Shown piece by piece: positions 32,557-44,984 of a stretch of DNA of 64,000 nucleotides (the stretch's first letter is position 1; every line of letters begins with the position of its first letter). Below the pieces are notes generated by a model. It was not told the origin of the DNA. It worked only from the letters and a program-made list of their open reading frames with translations, and ran no database searches. Location: the NCBI GenBank assembly GCA_000708835.1, contig DF237078.1:1-64000 (forward strand), given 5' to 3'. The position numbers and the translations under genes were made by a program. Origin of the DNA: Klebsormidium nitens. Lineage: Eukaryota > Plantae > Klebsormidiophyceae.

Positions 32557-34384
32557 ATGGGAACCTGAGGGGCAAACATGCGCACACCTCGTAGGTAATA
32601 GACGTACCAGCAGCGGCTTGAGGCTGCCGGCCTTACTTTCCGCCTTGAGTTTGGGAAGATACGAGTTGCGAGTTGTGCATTTTTTGAAAATCGTGGATTC
32701 TCCTATTAGCACTGCGGACGTGCCGATGTGCTATGATAGGGTCGGCTGGCACCAAAGTTGCTTGTCGCCAGGCACCGGCATCCGTCGCTGGACAGTAGGT
32801 CTTCAGTCTTGTAGAGCAATTGCTCAAGGAAGAGTAATAAGTTAGGCCTTAGTGTTGACAGCTTCCGTTAGTCGACTCAACGAATGACTGCAGTTGCAGG
32901 AGAATCGACATTGAATTCCAGCGCACCAATAGCTGAGGGACGGATGTGGATCGCCCCTGCAACAACGAGTGTTGGTTTGGACAGAGAACGTATTTCGAAA
33001 TGTCGCTCATTGATAAAGTTGCAAGTCAACGGTGCCATAAATATGCAGGCCGCAGTTGCACCTCGACTGCAACCTACACACCCGCCGCCGAGATCATCCA
33101 AGTTTCACGATATCCGGGATCGGTTCAAAAACCCGATGCAAGGATAGCCAGCCCCACATGGGCCTTAAGCCTGGCGGCGGCCAGTGCATGGCCATGGCCA
33201 GCCGCCGGAACCTGGCTGTGTGTCATTATTGCACAATCAGGCATCCCCATGGTTCTGTAGCTCCTTTCGCCTGTTTAATCAACCAATGATCCCAACCCTG
33301 GTATATGTTAAGATGCCAGCTTGCTGTGAATAAGCACGCACGGATTGTATTTAGTAGATCAGTTCTTACCACCCGGACCACCCGTGACCAGCACCACTGC
33401 GAAACCGTATGTGTTGAAAATGTGCATCCGTGCGGAATCATGGTTGCAGCATCCTGCAATGCCAGTCGAGCGGCGGCCGTCCGCCCACAGTGCGTCAACA
33501 ACCACATGGCCATACCGGTATCATTGTGCCATGCATGGCATGAGCTCAAATTGGAAACGAACGGTACAAAACCAGTGAATTGACAGACTCAATAAGCTAT
33601 ATAGCTCATGCACGCTATAGCTAACCTCTCATGGTTAGCTGTCTGCGTGGACGGCTCTAGGCAGGGGTTTAAGAATATAAGAGCCGATGATGCAATAGCA
33701 CTGAGTAATGTAAAACCGCCTTCACATGTATACAAAAATATCTGGGATTTAGGAAATGATCTCAAAAACGTTTCCAAGTTACAACTGAAAACCTGCCGTC
33801 CAGCATGCCCATTGAATACATAGAGGCCAACCATGGAAGATGGCCTCTTTTCGTACTCGCCGTAGCCAAATAGGGCATATAGGCCACCGTTGTAAGATCA
33901 ACCTCACAACAATGCTCAGAGTCCATGCATTCAGCCTCCAGATCATGATGAAATGAAAGTCTTGCTGACCATGCACTGCAAGGCAAAATTAAAACGATGT
34001 GATACCATAGTGCCCAATGCTTGAAGTGAAGTAGAGCTGAAATGGGTTTGCAACGTACTCTTTTGAAAGGCGAATCTCTTTCCGAGCAGATCAATCTGTA
34101 CATGTCAGTAGTGTAACCAATGTTTGATCTTTAGCAAACGCAGATCCTTTGCGCGCCAACCCAGCCAAGCAGGCAAGATTGATCCTGCAAGGCGGTCGCA
34201 TTGAAACTCACAGTCTCCTACTTTAAACAACCCAAGCACTAAAAATCTGGTGGGCTATGATGGCTTTACGCGTATCCCCTCGAGTTGCAAACTGATCTCC
34301 TGGATTACAAAGCCCCCTCCACCCCCCCTTTCTTTTTTCCCTGTTTCTATTTTACAATACCCTTATGACACCAAAAATAATATC

Positions 34385-36704
34385 TCAACTCTGGCTATCC
34401 TCCTCTGAGCCCTCCACATCAGGTGTGGTGCTGTAGCTTTCTAGCCGCCTCCACACGACTGCCGGAGCATCCAGAGCCATTGCCTGCGCCTGCGACCTGA
34501 CCAGCGCCTGGTTGAGAGCACCCAAGCCAATGCTGGTCGCCAGGAGCCGCCTCGGCCATGCGGCCGTTGCTGGCACCTTCTCTGCAGGCTTTGCCAGGTC
34601 CTGCCCCGCCTCCGGCTGAGGCCTGGCCACCTTAACCTTCCCGATCCGCGCCAGGCTCGGCCCTTTCGCATTACGCACTGGGATGCGCGTGAACAGCGCC
34701 CGCCGCGGAAGCATCCCCACCCTCTTCTTCTGCACCTTGCTGGGCGCGACGTTCTCGTTCTCCTCCACGGCCGGTGCAACAACCGGCTCCGCCCCTGCCT
34801 TTGGCCAGGCACACCGGGGCCCCTCCACTCGCGCCTCCTCAGCCCCTGGCAGCTTCAACGCACACCTGGGGCCCAGGACAGTTTCTGCAGGCACCTTCAG
34901 GGCACACCGGGGGCCAAGAGCTCTCTCCTCTGGGAGCTTGATGGGACAGCGGGGACCAAGGGCAGGGGGTTGATCCTCAGAGACAGCCTGCACCCCTCCT
35001 TTCCTGGGCCAAGCACAAGCTGCGCCGAGCACTGGAACGGGGGCAGGGGCAGGGGCAGGGGCGTTCACTCTAAGAGCGCAGCGTGGGCCCAGGACGTCAG
35101 GAGGGGCAGCAGGGGAGAGGGAGGGGACCCCCTGCTTGGCAGGCCACTCGCATCTAGGACCAGCTGGCGTGGGAGTAGACGGGCCGTGTGACCTGAAGAA
35201 GATCAGGCCACACATAAGAAGAGGGTTCACCTAGCGCATAATGCTCAAAATAGACAGCGAGCAATGCAGTGTCTCGGACCACAATGTAAACAAGTATTGA
35301 CAGATTCTACCTACTTCACACTGCACTGTCCTGCGCATGTACAGGTTTTCCCAGCAAACACAGTAATCATCCAGACAAGTTAAGCATTTCCTGCTTGTTG
35401 CATTATAAACGAGATACCCTTCCAAGCCAAGGAGGAAAACTTGGAAACCTGCAGAGCTGAGGATCAAACAACGTCTATTACGCAATCTGCACATGGAATG
35501 GGTCCTAAACACATCAAAAACGGAGCAGCCAACTCACATACTTGTAATAGGAGATGCAGAGTTGCCCTCACCTTGCTGACTGCTCAACTGGAAGTTGAGG
35601 CTGCACCCTGGGCCAGGCGCATCGTGGCCCCTGTGCCAAGTCGTGGTCCGGGATGGGCTCCAGGGCCACAGGGACCACCGCCCACGGCCAACCCTGGACC
35701 TCCTTCTTGGCCTTGCTAGGCTTAGCCACTCTCACGGCTTCCTTCTTGAGTAAAGACGCGGCAGCCGGCCAGGCACACCGTGGTCCCTCTGCAGACGGAA
35801 CTTCCACCATGGCTGCCTCTTTCCTGGGCCATTCACAGCGTGGATACATAGGCTCCACTTCCGGAAGGGCTGTCGAGAGGGCAGACTGGCTTTGTCTCGG
35901 CCAGGCACAGGCTGCCCCAGCAACAACAAGGGGAGCCGCCGCAGACCCCGTGATAGTGTTCCGGGGAAACTCACAGCGTGGCCCCAAGACCCTCTCCTCC
36001 GGCTCCGTCTTCAACACTGTGCGTGGCCAGGCGCACCGAGGACCCAAAACCCTTTCCTCTGCCTCCACTGTCAAAGTAGTGCGGGGCCAAGCACTCCGAG
36101 GACCCGGAAGCCGGTTTGCACTGTCGGTGCTGACTGCTTTCCGGGGCCAGGCGGACCTGGGGCCTAGCTCCGCCTCCTCCAGATCAAGCAAAAGCTGCTC
36201 CGACCTGCTCCTCTTCATGAGCTCCCCAGCAAACTCCTCATGAAGTTGCTGACCTTCTGTGACTTCCTCGTCCACTTCCTCAAAAAACATGACAGGGGTC
36301 GCTTGACCAGACTTGTGCTCTTTGGGCCAACTGCAGCGAGCGGCCTGCGACACTGGTTCAGGGGCTTGGGTCCATGTGGAGGCTGGAAGGGTGGGAGAAT
36401 TTACGGCCTTGACTGCCTGCGCTGCGCTTACAGCATCCACAGCTGTTCGCATTGAATCTTGGACCCAGGACGGAGATGGAAGAGTCTCTGCTTTGCTTCC
36501 GCACATTGCTTGTTGACTGTGCTGTGAGACAGCGAACCCTGTGCTCCGCTGAAAAGTTGACCTGCTGTGCGACCTCATGACCCCGCTCGACAGCTGCCGA
36601 ATCGCGGCCTGCTCACCAAGAAAAGCCCCGCTGCAGGAAGACATGGCACCTGACATTTGCCGCGTCTGCAGGGGGCTGATCGAAGCATACGTTGCAGACG
36701 CCAT
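34385..36704 (-). CDS. Unrecognised 646-aa repeat protein with ~16 GPRC(A/E)WP-like motifs and a plastid-transit-peptide-like N-terminus
   Basis: Exons 36704-35572 and 35192-34385 are joined in phase 2 by a canonical GT-AG intron (1941 nt, 647 codons including stop). The repeat motif is in frame in both exons. The Ser/Ala-rich, acid-poor N-terminus (MASATYASISPLQTRQMSGAMSSCSGAFLG) resembles a transit peptide. Confidence 0.8.
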
Positions 36705-37035
36705 TGCGTGGACACTTTCTCAGAAGAATGTGGTCCACCAAAGTGCCCTGCCCAACTTGTATGTTCGACCAGACCTGACCCTACCGCCTCTGGCGACGTG
36801 ACTTCGAGAACTCCCGCAGCAGCATTCTTCCTGCAAGTTCAACACAGGCGCAGACTTACAAGTTACACAGCCTCACTGTCGCACTGAAGTCTGACAGGCA
36901 CAGTAGCGAATTTGCAGCAACTGGTGCGCGGGACCTTCGCTGATTCGGATAGCCGCCGTGCTGACTAGGAAATTTTGTGGATAACGCTATCCACTTTTCT
37001 TGCTTTCGACAGACACAATGACCTGCTCCAGCCGG

Positions 37036-39785: not shown

Positions 39786-42700
39786 CTACAAAGATGCAGG
39801 CTTTGCTCTGTCACCATTGGTGCCGGTGTCGGATGTTATTCGACTTCTTTCAAGACGCATCACCTGGAAAACGAGAAAGAAGATTGCCATATTAGGCGTG
39901 CCTTCTATGGCACCGTAGGTGCCGAGTCACCGTGCCACCATAGTCGATGGCGATGGGTTGTATCTATGCAAACCGACACTCTCATCGGAGTTATTGTGCA
40001 GCACATCTGGAGTTCCCTTCGGCGCCTGGACCATGTCTGACCATTGGCATTGGCACGGGGCATCGGTGTGACACGCATCCGCACCGGCAGGTCGGACGGT
40101 TCTTCTCAGCGCAGTTACGCAATTGGGCTGCCGCTCACCTTGTCCTCGTTCATGGTCAAGCGCTCCTCAAACATGGCCATGGTCTGCGTCAGCACGTCCA
40201 GCTGGCCCACAATGTGCTGCACGCACGCCACGACAACACGCAGAGTTTCAACGTGCTCACGAGCGGGCAAAAAAGGTTGTTGCCGGCAAAACTCTTCGTC
40301 AATAACCACAAAAGGTCATCGGAGACGGGAAAGACGCACAGAGCAGTTTTGGAGCTGTAGCCTGGTTTCTAGAACTCCATTGGGCAGTGGACGCAGAGCG
40401 CGAAGGATTTGCCCTCGCTCTTGACAACATAAATCTCCCAAAATAGCAACTTAAAGGGTTCGAGTGTAAGAGCTACTTACTTGGAGGGTAGACGCCAGCG
40501 CCTCGTACTCCGTGGCCGCGGCCGGGGCGGTCGCCTGGAGTGCCTCGCGCGCGCGTGCCTCCGCCGCCCTCTCTGCAGCAGGAACTGCTGTCTCCTCCTG
40601 CGTCTCCGGCTGCACAGGATCGAGGAGAAGCGTCGCTCTTCAGTCAGGGATCGCTTCAAGCAGAAGCCACGCCCTGTTGGAGACAAGTCCTGGCGTCGAC
40701 ACTGGGTCAAGGGTCAAGCATCCTATGGAGGCCCCGACGTGTGATGCTCCCCGCCAGGTGGGTTTCCTGCTCCATAATTAGCTACATCTCCAAGTCAAAA
40801 AATCCATACGTTCCAATATAGGAACAACGCACTGGAAAAGTCAACTCCTAGACGATTCTTTGCTACCTTGTTCTCACAGTCCCCCACCTGCTCTCTTTGA
40901 CTTGGCCCCGCTGATGGCCTAGGCTCCCTTCTTGTTGGCCCTGCTTCGTTTCCAACAGGTCCCTGCGCTGCTTCACGCTGTCGCGGAGTTGGCAGGGCCG
41001 GACCGTCTTTCCCAGCCGGCCGCGCCACACCGCCAGCCTTCTTGCTGGCCGCAGGAGCGTCTCTGGCGGCGGGTGGCACGTTCTCCTTGGTGGTGGCAGC
41101 CAGTACGTACCCCTCTGCGAGGAAATGGTGTAATTGACTTTCAGTTAGAGGGATGGCCAGCGGAGACAACATCCGGCTTTCATTTGAGAGTATGACATAA
41201 AGATTGCGTCAATCGGCTCCGTTCAGAGCGCGCGTCTTCAACGTCGAGCCCTCCCGAGAATGTAGGAGGCTTTATCGAGCACGACCAAAATTCGAGGTCG
41301 CGGCGGACCGGTGCTCTGAAGGAACTATGCTGCAAATCGTTGAACTGGTAGAAAGCATTTGCAGAGCTCATTGCAGATTGTCGAAGGGCCAGCAAACAGC
41401 GGCCCTTTGAAGTACAAGCGGCAGCTCGCACGCCCCTCTGCAGTCAGCCGCCAGCGCATATTCGTAGCTCGCGCTGCGCGGCGCTCACCGACGGCCCTGT
41501 CGAAGTTGGTGCGCCAGACCATGACCTGCTCGTCCGCTCCGCCCGACGCAAAGAAGTCGCCCGCTGGCGAGAAGTTTGCGCACGTGGAGGGGCCCTCGTG
41601 GCCGTGCAGCGTGTAGAACAGGTGGCCCTCCCGCAGGTCCCACACCTGGGGCGTATCACGTTTGTAAGATTTTCAGCGCATTCCCAAAACGCCCCTGGAT
41701 ATGCCGATCAGTCAACAAGCTGGATCCTTTCGACCAACCCTTGTCCAAAGGACACATCCTTTGTATTCTTGAAAGCTGCCTCCTCAGCATCTGGCAGACA
41801 AGTAGTTCAAGGTTAGCTGGAGCAAGCAACGCCCCCTGCTCTCTGCATCGACGAAGCACCTTCCAAACGACTGGACGACCATACTTGCCAGCTTGAGGCA
41901 GCTGTTTGGAATGTACCTTGAGAGTGCTGTCCTGGCTGGAGGAGATGAGGAAGTTGCCGGAGGGGTGGAAGTCAACGGACTGGACGGGACCGGTATGCGC
42001 CCCATAGTGCTGCACCAGGGACCGTGTGCGCACGTCGAACACCTGACGACAAGGAAAAGGTCAGCGATCTGGGGGCCTGTTTCTCCATTGCCCTTTCGAT
42101 GCGCTACTCAAAGAAGCTGCCCGAGTCCGACTTGCTTTCTTGTCAAAGCGAGTGGCAAGAGTGCTGTCCCATAAGTGAAATGAATCCTTGTCACGAAGTG
42201 CAGTTTAACGGAGTCTGATGCAAGGTCTGACGTCCTGCTTGCCAGGCGTGGGCGAACCAAAGACAAGGGACTCTTTTTTTGGTAACGTGTTGAGTAGGCG
42301 ACTGACGGTGGAACCGCTGACCTTGATGGACTTGTCGGAGGAGCAGGAGACCATGCAATTGCCGTCGGGGTGGAACTGGACGCTATTCACATTCCTGCGA
42401 ACAGAAGCACCGGCTTACTTGGTTGGCCTGCTTCGGTTGAAAAACAAGACGAGAAGCCCGATGTGAACATATCGAGTTGGCAAGAAGCAGGTGCAACTCT
42501 GCTTCGAGTGCGAACAGCCTGACGGCCTGCTGAATCAAACTCTTCGTTCTTGGGTTTGATTCTCACCCTGTGTGGTCGTCATATGTCTGCAGACATGTAC
42601 GTCTCTCTAGATCCCAGACTTTTGATGTCTTGTCGTCTCCACCAGAGACGGCAAGCCTGCACGTGAGAGCCAGATGATTGAGCGGCTTTTGGAGTATCGG

Positions 42701-44286
42701 CAAGGGGAGAGATCAAACAGAGGTAGTGGATCCTCCTAAGGATACCACAACAAACGTAGGTGGGAAGCACCTCTTGCCTACACCTTGACAGACAAGCAAG
42801 TATCAGATGTTGTTACCAGCGACCAGGACTCAACGATTGTCTTCAGAGTGCTTTACCTGCCATCTGGGCTGAACTGCGCAGACCGGATCCAGTTGCTATG
42901 CCCAGATAACGTGAACTGGAACTTCCGGCTTTGCATTGACCAGACCTGCAGAGGAGCAAAACCCCCACAGCGCTGTAAAGCAAAAGCATCTTGCTTGCTC
43001 CAGGCATCTCACCGCATTGTCACTGCACCTCGGATCATCTGGGGCACCTCTTTCTTATGACAGCGTACGGGAAACGACGCCGGGATGAGGCAAGCTGCTT
43101 AAGAATCTGGAAGCATGGCTCAGAGAGCGGTACTCAAGATGACTAACATCTTCCGCAAGTGGCGGGCAGACTTGCTCACCTTGACGGCCTTATCATCTGA
43201 GCCACTTATTAGGAACTGTCCATTCTGCGAGAAGGCGACACTTCGCACAGGGGCTGTGTGAGCCGACAGGATCGTAGACCGGCCCTCTCTGCAAGAGTCA
43301 AGATCGCAAAGAGGCACATTCAGCACAACGAGCCGCTTGATTGAGTCCATTAAAGTCGAATTACCTTGTCATGAAGCTCAGGACCCAAACAATGAGCAGA
43401 AATCCACACTTGCTTTGGCTTATTGGTACAGGGACTCACACAGTGGGCACCCAGAGCCTGATGGTCTTGTCCTTGGACCCTGACGCAATGATGTCCCCCA
43501 CCGGAGAGAAGGCTACTGCAAAGACAGATGCCTGCAGGAAAGGAGTGGGCAAAGGCTAGGAGTAGACTTGTAGACGCTCGTTCTATGAGGAGATGAATGA
43601 AGGGTGCCAGTGCAAGCACAGCGTGACCTGAGCCGTGCATACGTGCTTGGACTCTATGGGTGCCACAAACAAGCTGCCTACGAGCCTAGATGCCTGCGGA
43701 GCTTGAAGTTCTGTGAGACCGCAGCACTATCAAATTACCAGTCAGAGCAGAGTGGTAATCAGGGGCTCGGTGCAAGGGAGTTGCCTACCTTGTGGCCCAC
43801 AAACTTGAAGGCCCGCAGCTGCGGTTTGAAGTTCCAAACCATCACCACACCATCCAGTGAAGATGAGACGACCTGTTTCATGTTGGGGTTGAAGACGACG
43901 GAGGTGACGGCATCCTTGTGGCCCCGGAAGGATCGCTCCAGAGCAGGGTCCTCACCCTGTGACAGAATTGGGTGCCGTTATAGCGTGCTCAGGCTCCAAT
44001 TCACCTTGGACGCAATTTGAAGCTGCTGCCCGCTGAGGGAGATAGATTCAGAGGGTAACTGCCGTAAGGATCACTTTTCTGCGGTATCCTTAGCTCAACA
44101 AGTTACTGAGTGGTAATTTGCAAGCAGAGTGCCAACCGATGCTGTTATCTAATAGGGAGCAAGAAAGGCCATATGATATTAAAATTGTGTTGTGGAACGA
44201 CTTGCTTTCACCTCCCCATCAGCAAATCACAAGAATAGCTAGCTACTGCAATCAATACCCGAATCATCAGGCTGGCAACTCACCAT
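39786..44286 (-). CDS. POC1: Centriolar WD40 protein POC1 (WDR51)
   Basis: The start ATG (44286-44284) splices to [56 protein letters not shown] (43956-). Successive WD repeats follow ([56 protein letters not shown]). The C-terminal Poc1 coiled coil reads [26 protein letters not shown]; last exon 39863-39786. Confidence 0.93.
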
Positions 44287-44984
44287 GCCTGGCTCAGCGC
44301 TCTCCTTCATTCTGCCAAGCTGCAATACGTGTGGAGTCAAAGATGCTGCTCTGATTAGATGGGTGACCAACTCTGCAACACTGCGCATCTGCCCTCCAGG
44401 ATCAGGTCTCCAACCGTTCGATGGTAGTCCTGCTGGACAATAGCAACACGAGTTTCAAAGACCAACAGCCGGCTGCAAGGATTGGGGTTGAGAAGAGCTC
44501 GGCCGCTCTCACCGTTCTTCTGAGCTCATTTCATGCCGCAATGTTTCTAAATTCTAGGCAAGAGCTTTTATTGTCGAGAAGCTGAAAGGGAGCCCGCGAG
44601 CTGGAAGTGAGAGAACCCTAGAAACTGAACATGGAGTTCAAATTTCTACAAACGGTTGCATGCTCTTGTCGCCAAGAAAGCCTTATTCACACCAGGTCAG
44701 ATTGCAGATATTTGCGGCCCACATCCGTACCAGCGCTGTTTTGGCCTCGAATCGGTGTTAACACCAACCACATGAAGGAAAGGGCGACCTTGGGCAGCTC
44801 TGGCTTTTCTGCACCTTCAATCACAAGTTCTGGCGTCCGAGTTCACCGGATTTGTTGAGCCCAAGAGTTTTCAAACTTGAATCAAAGCTTTTTCAATGAG
44901 AAGGAGGTGAACTTGCAAGTTCTGTGAGCTAGAGTCGCTCAAACTCAGAGGTCATTTTATGTTTGAGGAGTTGCTGTGTCCATA

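Follow-up and report, generated by a model that had tools for sequence, protein, structure and literature searches.

The window analysed in this study is a 64,000-nucleotide (nt) stretch of Klebsormidium nitens DNA (positions 1 to 64,000 of contig DF237078.1, assembly GCA_000708835.1). It contains, on its minus strand, the two-exon nuclear gene KFL_001290050, whose product of 646 amino acids (aa) is publicly annotated as "hypothetical protein". We found that this protein carries a long array of a short Cys/Trp motif within a predicted disordered chain, and that it represents a small family conserved in algae and ferns.

Gene structure and transcription

Exon 1 of KFL_001290050 (35,572-36,704, minus strand) opens with the start codon at 36,704-36,702, encodes residues 1-377 together with two bases of codon 378, and is bounded by a GT donor (35,571-35,570); its open reading frame (ORF) matches the public protein at 100%. 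The following intron (35,193-35,571, minus strand) is 379 nt long and has GT..AG ends. Exon 2 (34,385-35,192, minus strand), defined by the spliced frame and by assembled contigs, provides the final base of codon 378, residues 379-646 and the stop codon (34,387-34,385). The translation of the complete model is identical to the public protein.

The transcribed span (34,200-36,889, minus strand) was delimited using RNA-like assembly contigs of 4 runs, each from a different study, which cover positions 34,200-35,190 and 35,570-36,889. These place a 5′ untranslated region (UTR) of approximately 185 nt before the start codon; the 3′ UTR exceeds 185 nt, the transcript continuing past position 34,200. 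Contigs of all 4 runs skip exactly 379 nt, and the word depth amounts to 67-484 over the exons versus 0-16 over the intron, a measure that permits no ranking of expression level. The exact skip and the contrast in depth indicate that the gene is transcribed and spliced as modelled. An earlier note, drawn up from the nucleotide sequence alone, had predicted a two-exon protein of this length and had named the lack of a spliced transcript as grounds for rejecting it; the contigs contain such a transcript, and the public protein agrees with the prediction.

Separate intron contigs, with a depth of 3-16 (67-484 for the exons), were present in 4 of the 4 runs, i.e. the intron is also retained at a low level.

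The motif array and the selection acting on it

The protein contains 16 motifs of the eight-residue type GPRCAWPR, which start at residues 121, 181, 201, 221, 241, 263, 287, 307, 359, 389, 413, 434, 457, 471, 485 and 502. Nine are encoded by exon 1 and seven by exon 2, and the fourth position is occupied by Cys in 14 motifs and by Ser in the other two, all of which corresponds, motif by motif, to what had been read from the sequence in the earlier note. A 17th copy, the Cys-less AAWPRR, is located at residues 587-592. The start-to-start gaps are 60, 20, 20, 20, 22, 24, 20, 52, 30, 24, 21, 23, 14, 14 and 17 residues (median ~21, minimum 14). The strict pattern R[CS]xWP occurs 9 times in the protein, compared with a maximum of 2 over 20,000 composition-preserving shuffles, and the other genes of the window yielded only two weak chance matches to the motif, both in unvalidated frames.

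The first, isolated motif, AARCSWPK (residues 121-128; 36,321-36,344, minus strand), is also kept in K. subtile and in the Klebsormidium relative P0004. The exon-1 part of the array (residues 181-377; 35,572-36,164, minus strand), which is predicted to be disordered, comprises eight motifs of the form [G/A/Y][P/A]R[C/S]x[W/F]P[R/K] and a degenerate GWPW at residues 338-341. The exon-2 part (residues 378-509; 34,799-35,192, minus strand) comprises seven motifs, including the variants GPRCAL[K/R] and GPRCPI, which are specific to Klebsormidium and are retained in the relatives P0029 and P0028.

An analysis of the region with Tandem Repeats Finder (TRF) revealed only one DNA-level tandem repeat in the gene, a (GGGGCA)3.8 microsatellite (35,040-35,062) encoding an APAPAPAP spacer. 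All of the synonymous Gly, Pro, Arg and Cys codons, as well as both Ser codon families, are used across the motif copies, and nucleotide identity among copies reaches 62% in the motifs versus 29% in the adjacent spacers. The same contrast is apparent between KFL_001290050 and three other Klebsormidium sequences, whose identity to it within and outside the motifs is 98% vs 83% (K. subtile), 89% vs 57% (P0004) and 92% vs 62% (P0029). Given this codon diversity, these differences in identity and the lack of a DNA repeat, it is the peptide motif that is under selection, as had been proposed: purifying selection preserves the motif, whereas the spacers diverge. The TRF result and the codon usage and identity of the copies led us to reject both DNA slippage and gene conversion as the source of the repeats. 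The spacers had been described as freely varying. They are less conserved than the motifs, but residues 181-260, which form four 20-aa units, keep spacers related to each other, of the form T.L..E.EERVL.

Distribution and consensus of the RCxWPR family

Relatives of the protein were gathered by word-indexed searches and by running a profile exhaustively against 1.84 billion representative proteins, and they form a small family (39 clusters at E ≤1e-3). Among algae, the named members are those of K. nitens, K. subtile, Coleochaete scutata, several Closterium strains, Chlorokybus and Pedinophyceae sp. YPF-701. The named fern members are those of Adiantum capillus-veneris, A. nelumboides, Pteridium aquilinum and Ceratopteris richardii; in Adiantum and Ceratopteris the genes are placed on contigs of chromosome scale, and the Pteridium proteins derive from a transcriptome. 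Transcript or metagenome contigs account for all other members. No named match was obtained from seed plants, bryophytes, Chara, Chlamydomonas, Chlorella or Ulva, within the bounds set by the sensitivity of the searches and the proteomes in the collections. From the sequences gathered, the family is judged to predate the chlorophyte-streptophyte split.

The members have in common (i) a Ser/Thr/Ala-rich, acid-poor N-terminus and (ii) a disordered motif array, and in most streptophyte members (iii) the last motif runs into a conserved tail, PRR[M/L]LATS[V/I]GLG..N, most of which is absent from the Closterium and pedinophyte proteins. KFL_001290050 displays the complete set of defining features, with several motifs in a disordered chain, a transit-peptide-like N-terminus and the terminal WPRR/PRR-LATS tail. 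The number of motifs per protein ranges from 3 to 16 across the family, and is 4-16 in the named algal holders versus 3-5 in the ferns, where Adiantum, Pteridium and Ceratopteris each have two paralogue types with 3-5 motifs apiece. The isoelectric point (pI) of the K. nitens protein is 9.13; those of its relatives span 5.1-9.8, some being acidic (5.1-6.4).

The earlier note had recognised no family for this protein. Pfam indeed gave no match above threshold for either exon or for 10 relatives, a sequence search of the PDB retrieved no chain at E ≤1, and the ESM Atlas feature search returned no usable match (structure neighbours had template modelling (TM) scores <0.25, which are meaningless). 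In the 8.4 million full texts searched, neither the motif (CAWPR, RCAWP and variants) nor the gene identifier led to a relevant paper. The family is thus present in no curated library and appears to be undescribed; the protein itself, belonging to a conserved family, is nevertheless not an orphan.

The consensus derived from 219 motif instances in 29 proteins is [G65/A/Y]-[P68/A31]-[R74/H13]-[C89/S11]-[A62]-W100-P100-[R84/K11] (numbers are percentages), with variable flanks. At the position two before WP[RK], Cys was counted 188 times, Ser 24 times and other residues 5 times. Cys is exchanged almost solely for Ser, by single-base changes from both Cys codons, which suggests a small, polar contact residue whose thiol may play an optional part, and speaks against a site where a metal or disulfide is strictly required.

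This position is central to one alternative, namely that the protein is a thiol redox polymer or a metal-binding protein, in which the 14 evenly spaced, Arg-flanked Cys residues are the working groups (in reversible disulfide networks, or with metal, persulfide or a cofactor) and are tuned by Trp-Pro. Such a role would agree with the presence of Cys in 89% of the motif instances and with the fact that 197 of the 292 Cys residues of 30 family proteins sit within C-x-W-P; the flanking Arg would moreover be expected to lower the thiol pKa. A precedent is provided by CP12, a small, disordered, redox-switched plastid protein with two Cys pairs and an AWD_VEEL core. The likeness consists in disorder and in a putative Cys gating of partner binding; CP12, however, has no motif array, and the Pfam and PDB searches revealed no similarity to it. 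We consider the alternative unlikely, since Ser occupies 11% of the motifs and, in every Klebsormidium species, is stably present at the start of the array, in its first two motifs, showing that a thiol is not essential to every motif. In addition, the conservation of W, P and R equals or exceeds that of Cys, which fits a recognition surface, and there are no CxxC or CC clusters.

Several members contain additional repeats. In the Chlorokybus homologue (P0034), the four RCxWPR motifs are followed, at residues ~283-385, by five copies of (D/H)QLERVRV(R/K)GV.Q placed ~17-20 residues apart. This second repeat is basic, helix-prone in appearance and unrelated to RCxWPR; it could be a second type of sticker or the result of a fused gene model. 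Two marine/metagenomic chlorophyte homologues (P0048 and P0035) carry a second motif, G(R/K)VWKYD, between the RCxWPR motifs. Both end in GARSxWPRR, and the terminal WPRR is thus common to chlorophyte and streptophyte members. Three Logan runs of a 2025 series (SRR32617105, SRR32617131 and SRR32617137) contain one organism expressing both land-plant-type paralogues, P0037 (type A, 5 motifs) and P0045 (type B). The [D/E]-x-P-K-S motif of the chlorarachniophyte protein PPAP28 is unrelated.

Predicted structure and terminal regions

The sticker-and-spacer anatomy that had been proposed for this protein, with a disordered array, is in agreement with structure prediction. The AlphaFold2 (AF2) model built on the family alignment has a mean predicted local distance difference test (pLDDT) score of 42, with 517 of the 646 residues below 50, and the model of the protein in the ESM Atlas has a pLDDT of 0.38. 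AF2 predicts helices only at residues 145-178 and 593-629 and none anywhere in array residues 181-510; the motif itself contains Gly and two Pro residues. The AF2 model of a fern paralogue is likewise disordered, with short helices only (pLDDT 45).

The N-terminus (approximately residues 1-60; 36,525-36,704, minus strand) resembles a transit peptide, as had been suggested, in that by a composition heuristic it is rich in Ser and Thr (30%) and poor in acidic residues (1 acidic and 5 basic in the first 55); the same heuristic finds such N-termini in orthologues. The short acidic patch pointed out previously coincides with the helix predicted at residues 145-178 (36,171-36,272, minus strand; pLDDT ~65). 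A basic region (residues 525-575; 34,601-34,753, minus strand) is kept within Klebsormidium, as seen in the alignment with P0029, and includes, at residues 533-536, a KKRV patch that by inspection is similar to a nuclear localisation signal.

The C-terminal part (residues 587-629; 34,439-34,567, minus strand) consists of the terminal AAWPRR followed by the conserved helix RLLATSIGLGALNQ..., which AF2 predicts at residues 593-629 with pLDDT values of up to 76. Its "PRR-LATS-GLG" tail is kept from Klebsormidium to Coleochaete and ferns. This conservation, together with the predicted helix, is what one would expect of a scaffold in the stroma that a hydrophobic C-terminal helix anchors to the thylakoid or the envelope, and the metagenomic member P0038 also has a hydrophobic, Gly-rich tail after its last motif. 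By inspection, the tail also resembles a twin-arginine translocation (Tat) signal, with two adjacent Arg residues, a Gly-rich stretch of mild hydrophobicity and Ala-x-Ala (in ferns, PRRMLATGVGLG...APALA); the fern homologues P0013, P0024 and P0027 share this resemblance. A membrane-held scaffold of this kind is nonetheless improbable. No membrane-spanning segment was predicted in any of the 23 members tested, in which inserting the best 19-mer would cost +3.6 to +9 kcal/mol by the Hessa scale; Kyte-Doolittle scores peak at ~1.4-1.5, the hydrophobic moment does not exceed 0.31, and most of the tail is absent from the Closterium and pedinophyte members. On the basis of hydrophobicity and hydrophobic moment, a transmembrane or amphipathic tail anchor was rejected. 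The identification of the tail as a Tat signal peptide was also discarded, because such signals act at the N-terminus, whereas the pattern lies at the C-terminus with only 0-30 residues after it.

The terminal helices are also relevant to the idea that the protein is a precursor cleaved into many small Cys/Trp peptides, in the manner of repeat-type peptides or ribosomally synthesised and post-translationally modified peptides. In multi-core peptide precursors a short conserved core is repeated between variable spacers, and the layout of KFL_001290050 matches this arrangement. We regard this origin of the repeats as very improbable, as there are no conserved processing sites beside the motif (the flank positions are variable), no signal peptide and, in the Pfam scans, no associated modifying domain; the spacer lengths are irregular, and the conserved terminal helices suggest that the protein remains intact.

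With respect to the surroundings of the gene, its upstream neighbour, at ~39,786-44,310 on the minus strand, is a called gene with a 480-aa product without a Pfam match on record. The remaining flanking genes encode an acyl-CoA dehydrogenase and an AMP-binding enzyme, and have no evident connection to KFL_001290050. Long plus-strand antisense ORFs of 96, 73, 92, 196 and 91 aa, located over positions 34,683-36,243, simply mirror the GC-rich coding sequence of the repeats; in the public annotation this interval holds the minus-strand gene alone, and strand is not readable from the contig data.

Comparison with Rubisco linkers

The earlier note had put the protein forward as a candidate pyrenoid or Rubisco linker. 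In this reading, Rubisco of streptophyte and early-diverging green algae would be bound by the RCxWPR motifs and either condensed by the array or tethered to a different structure of the pyrenoid. The closest resemblance is to PYCO1, the diatom pyrenoid linker, whose sticker is K-W-S-P-[R/Q] and for which Rubisco binding has been shown (Oh et al. 2023, as presented in PMC13655443 and PMC10927497). Both proteins are disordered and plastidial (putatively so for KFL_001290050), with a repeated, short, non-helical sticker combining Trp, Pro and a basic residue, and the W-P-R chemistry also recalls the W-[R/K] sticker of EPYC1. The two are not related in sequence, the motif of KFL_001290050 differs in having Cys/Ser two residues before Trp and Arg before that, and PYCO1 is lineage-specific whereas the RCxWPR family spans green algae and ferns.

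EPYC1 of Chlamydomonas, CsLinker of Chlorella and SUPA1 of Ulva each occur in one lineage and have 5-6 helical stickers placed 40-60 residues apart (PMC11570498; bioRxiv 10.64898/2026.07.16.738900). The K. nitens protein resembles them in alternating stickers and spacers, in its basic pI and high valency, and in being probably located in the stroma. It differs in its 16 Pro/Gly-rich stickers ~20 residues apart, its conserved terminal helices and its homologues in pyrenoid-less ferns. Known linkers in general are lineage-specific, mostly with helical stickers at the 40-60-residue spacing (PMC11570498, PMC13655443), and the hornwort pyrenoid condenses Rubisco via RbcS-STAR (PMC13655443). Measured against FLIPPer-type criteria (PMC11570498), the protein is disordered, has 16 repeats where at least 3 are called for, and has a pI above 8; the repeat spacing specified there is 20-120 residues, compared with a median of ~21 and a minimum of 14 here. 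The same criteria ask for repeats that are structured, helical elements, which the array motifs are not predicted to be.

The number of motifs, higher in algal holders than in ferns, would also suit a linker. The named algal holders all belong to genera that we take to be pyrenoid-bearing. Chlamydomonas, Chlorella and Ulva, from which no named match was obtained, have linkers of their own, and no streptophyte-algal linker was found in the literature searched. Disorder, valency and pI speak for the proposal, which is weakened by the fern homologues, the deep conservation and the very short spacers. The family is not confined to pyrenoid-bearing organisms, there being two paralogue types in ferns; it spans chlorophytes and streptophytes, unlike the lineage-specific linkers; the array motif is non-helical, for which PYCO1 is the known exception among linkers; and several relatives are acidic (pI 5.1-6.4). 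On balance, a linker or tether function looks unlikely.

In a broader version of the proposal, the green lineage would have used RCxWPR since before the chlorophyte-streptophyte split as a motif for binding Rubisco or assembling the pyrenoid. It would have kept a high valency in pyrenoid-bearing streptophyte algae and pedinophytes, given way to EPYC1, CsLinker and SUPA1 in core chlorophytes, been lost with the pyrenoid in most land plants, and been retained at low valency for another purpose in ferns. We give this history little credence; if true, it would overturn the view of all green Rubisco linkers as recent, lineage-specific inventions, and, given the high conservation of RbcL, the motif might also serve as a sticker that works with plant Rubisco.

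A proposed multivalent scaffold

The reading that we favour, to which we give an even chance, is that KFL_001290050 and its relatives are an old, small Viridiplantae family of disordered scaffolds, whose motif array would dock one conserved partner, probably in the plastid. The composition of the N-terminus suggests that the product is imported into this organelle. Each motif may then act as a weak docking site, presenting an Arg-Cys...Trp-Pro-Arg surface to one conserved folded partner, and its 16 copies would allow the chain to gain avidity or to cross-link. Docking or oligomerisation of the scaffold might fall to the two helices, the acidic one towards the N-terminus and the conserved one at the C-terminus, and the Arg-flanked, near-invariant Cys may make binding responsive to redox state. 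Among the putative partners, Rubisco is a single candidate. This reading is supported by the spliced transcript, by the number, codon diversity and conservation of the motifs, by the predicted disorder of the array, by the N-termini of the family and by the architecture, which is kept from a pedinophyte through streptophyte algae to ferns.

Three points weigh against it. Plastid targeting was deduced from composition, and KKRV could instead be a nuclear signal; the family pI of 5.1-9.8 means that a single electrostatic partner is not obvious; and the conserved Cys could signify chemistry (redox, metal or modification) in place of docking.

An analogous arrangement is found in Tic62 and TROL, which have C-terminal, Ser/Pro-rich repeats that bind ferredoxin-NADP+ reductase and contain neither Cys nor Trp. 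These are plastid scaffolds in which repeated Pro-rich linear motifs dock a conserved soluble enzyme, as envisaged for the RCxWPR scaffold. They differ from KFL_001290050 in the motif, which is limited to vascular plants, and in possessing folded or membrane domains. Multivalent, short-motif disordered scaffolds are already known, and it is the motif and the family that appear to be undescribed.

That an eight-residue Cys/Trp motif has stayed nearly invariant between pedinophytes and ferns suggests that a binding site or a chemistry, probably plastidial, has been conserved with it, and a new module of plastid interactions would be defined once the partner is identified. Should Rubisco be this partner, the family would bear on what condenses the enzyme in streptophyte algae, a question of interest for pyrenoid engineering. 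With any other partner, the family would still constitute a clean test case for multivalent short-motif scaffolds of the chloroplast.

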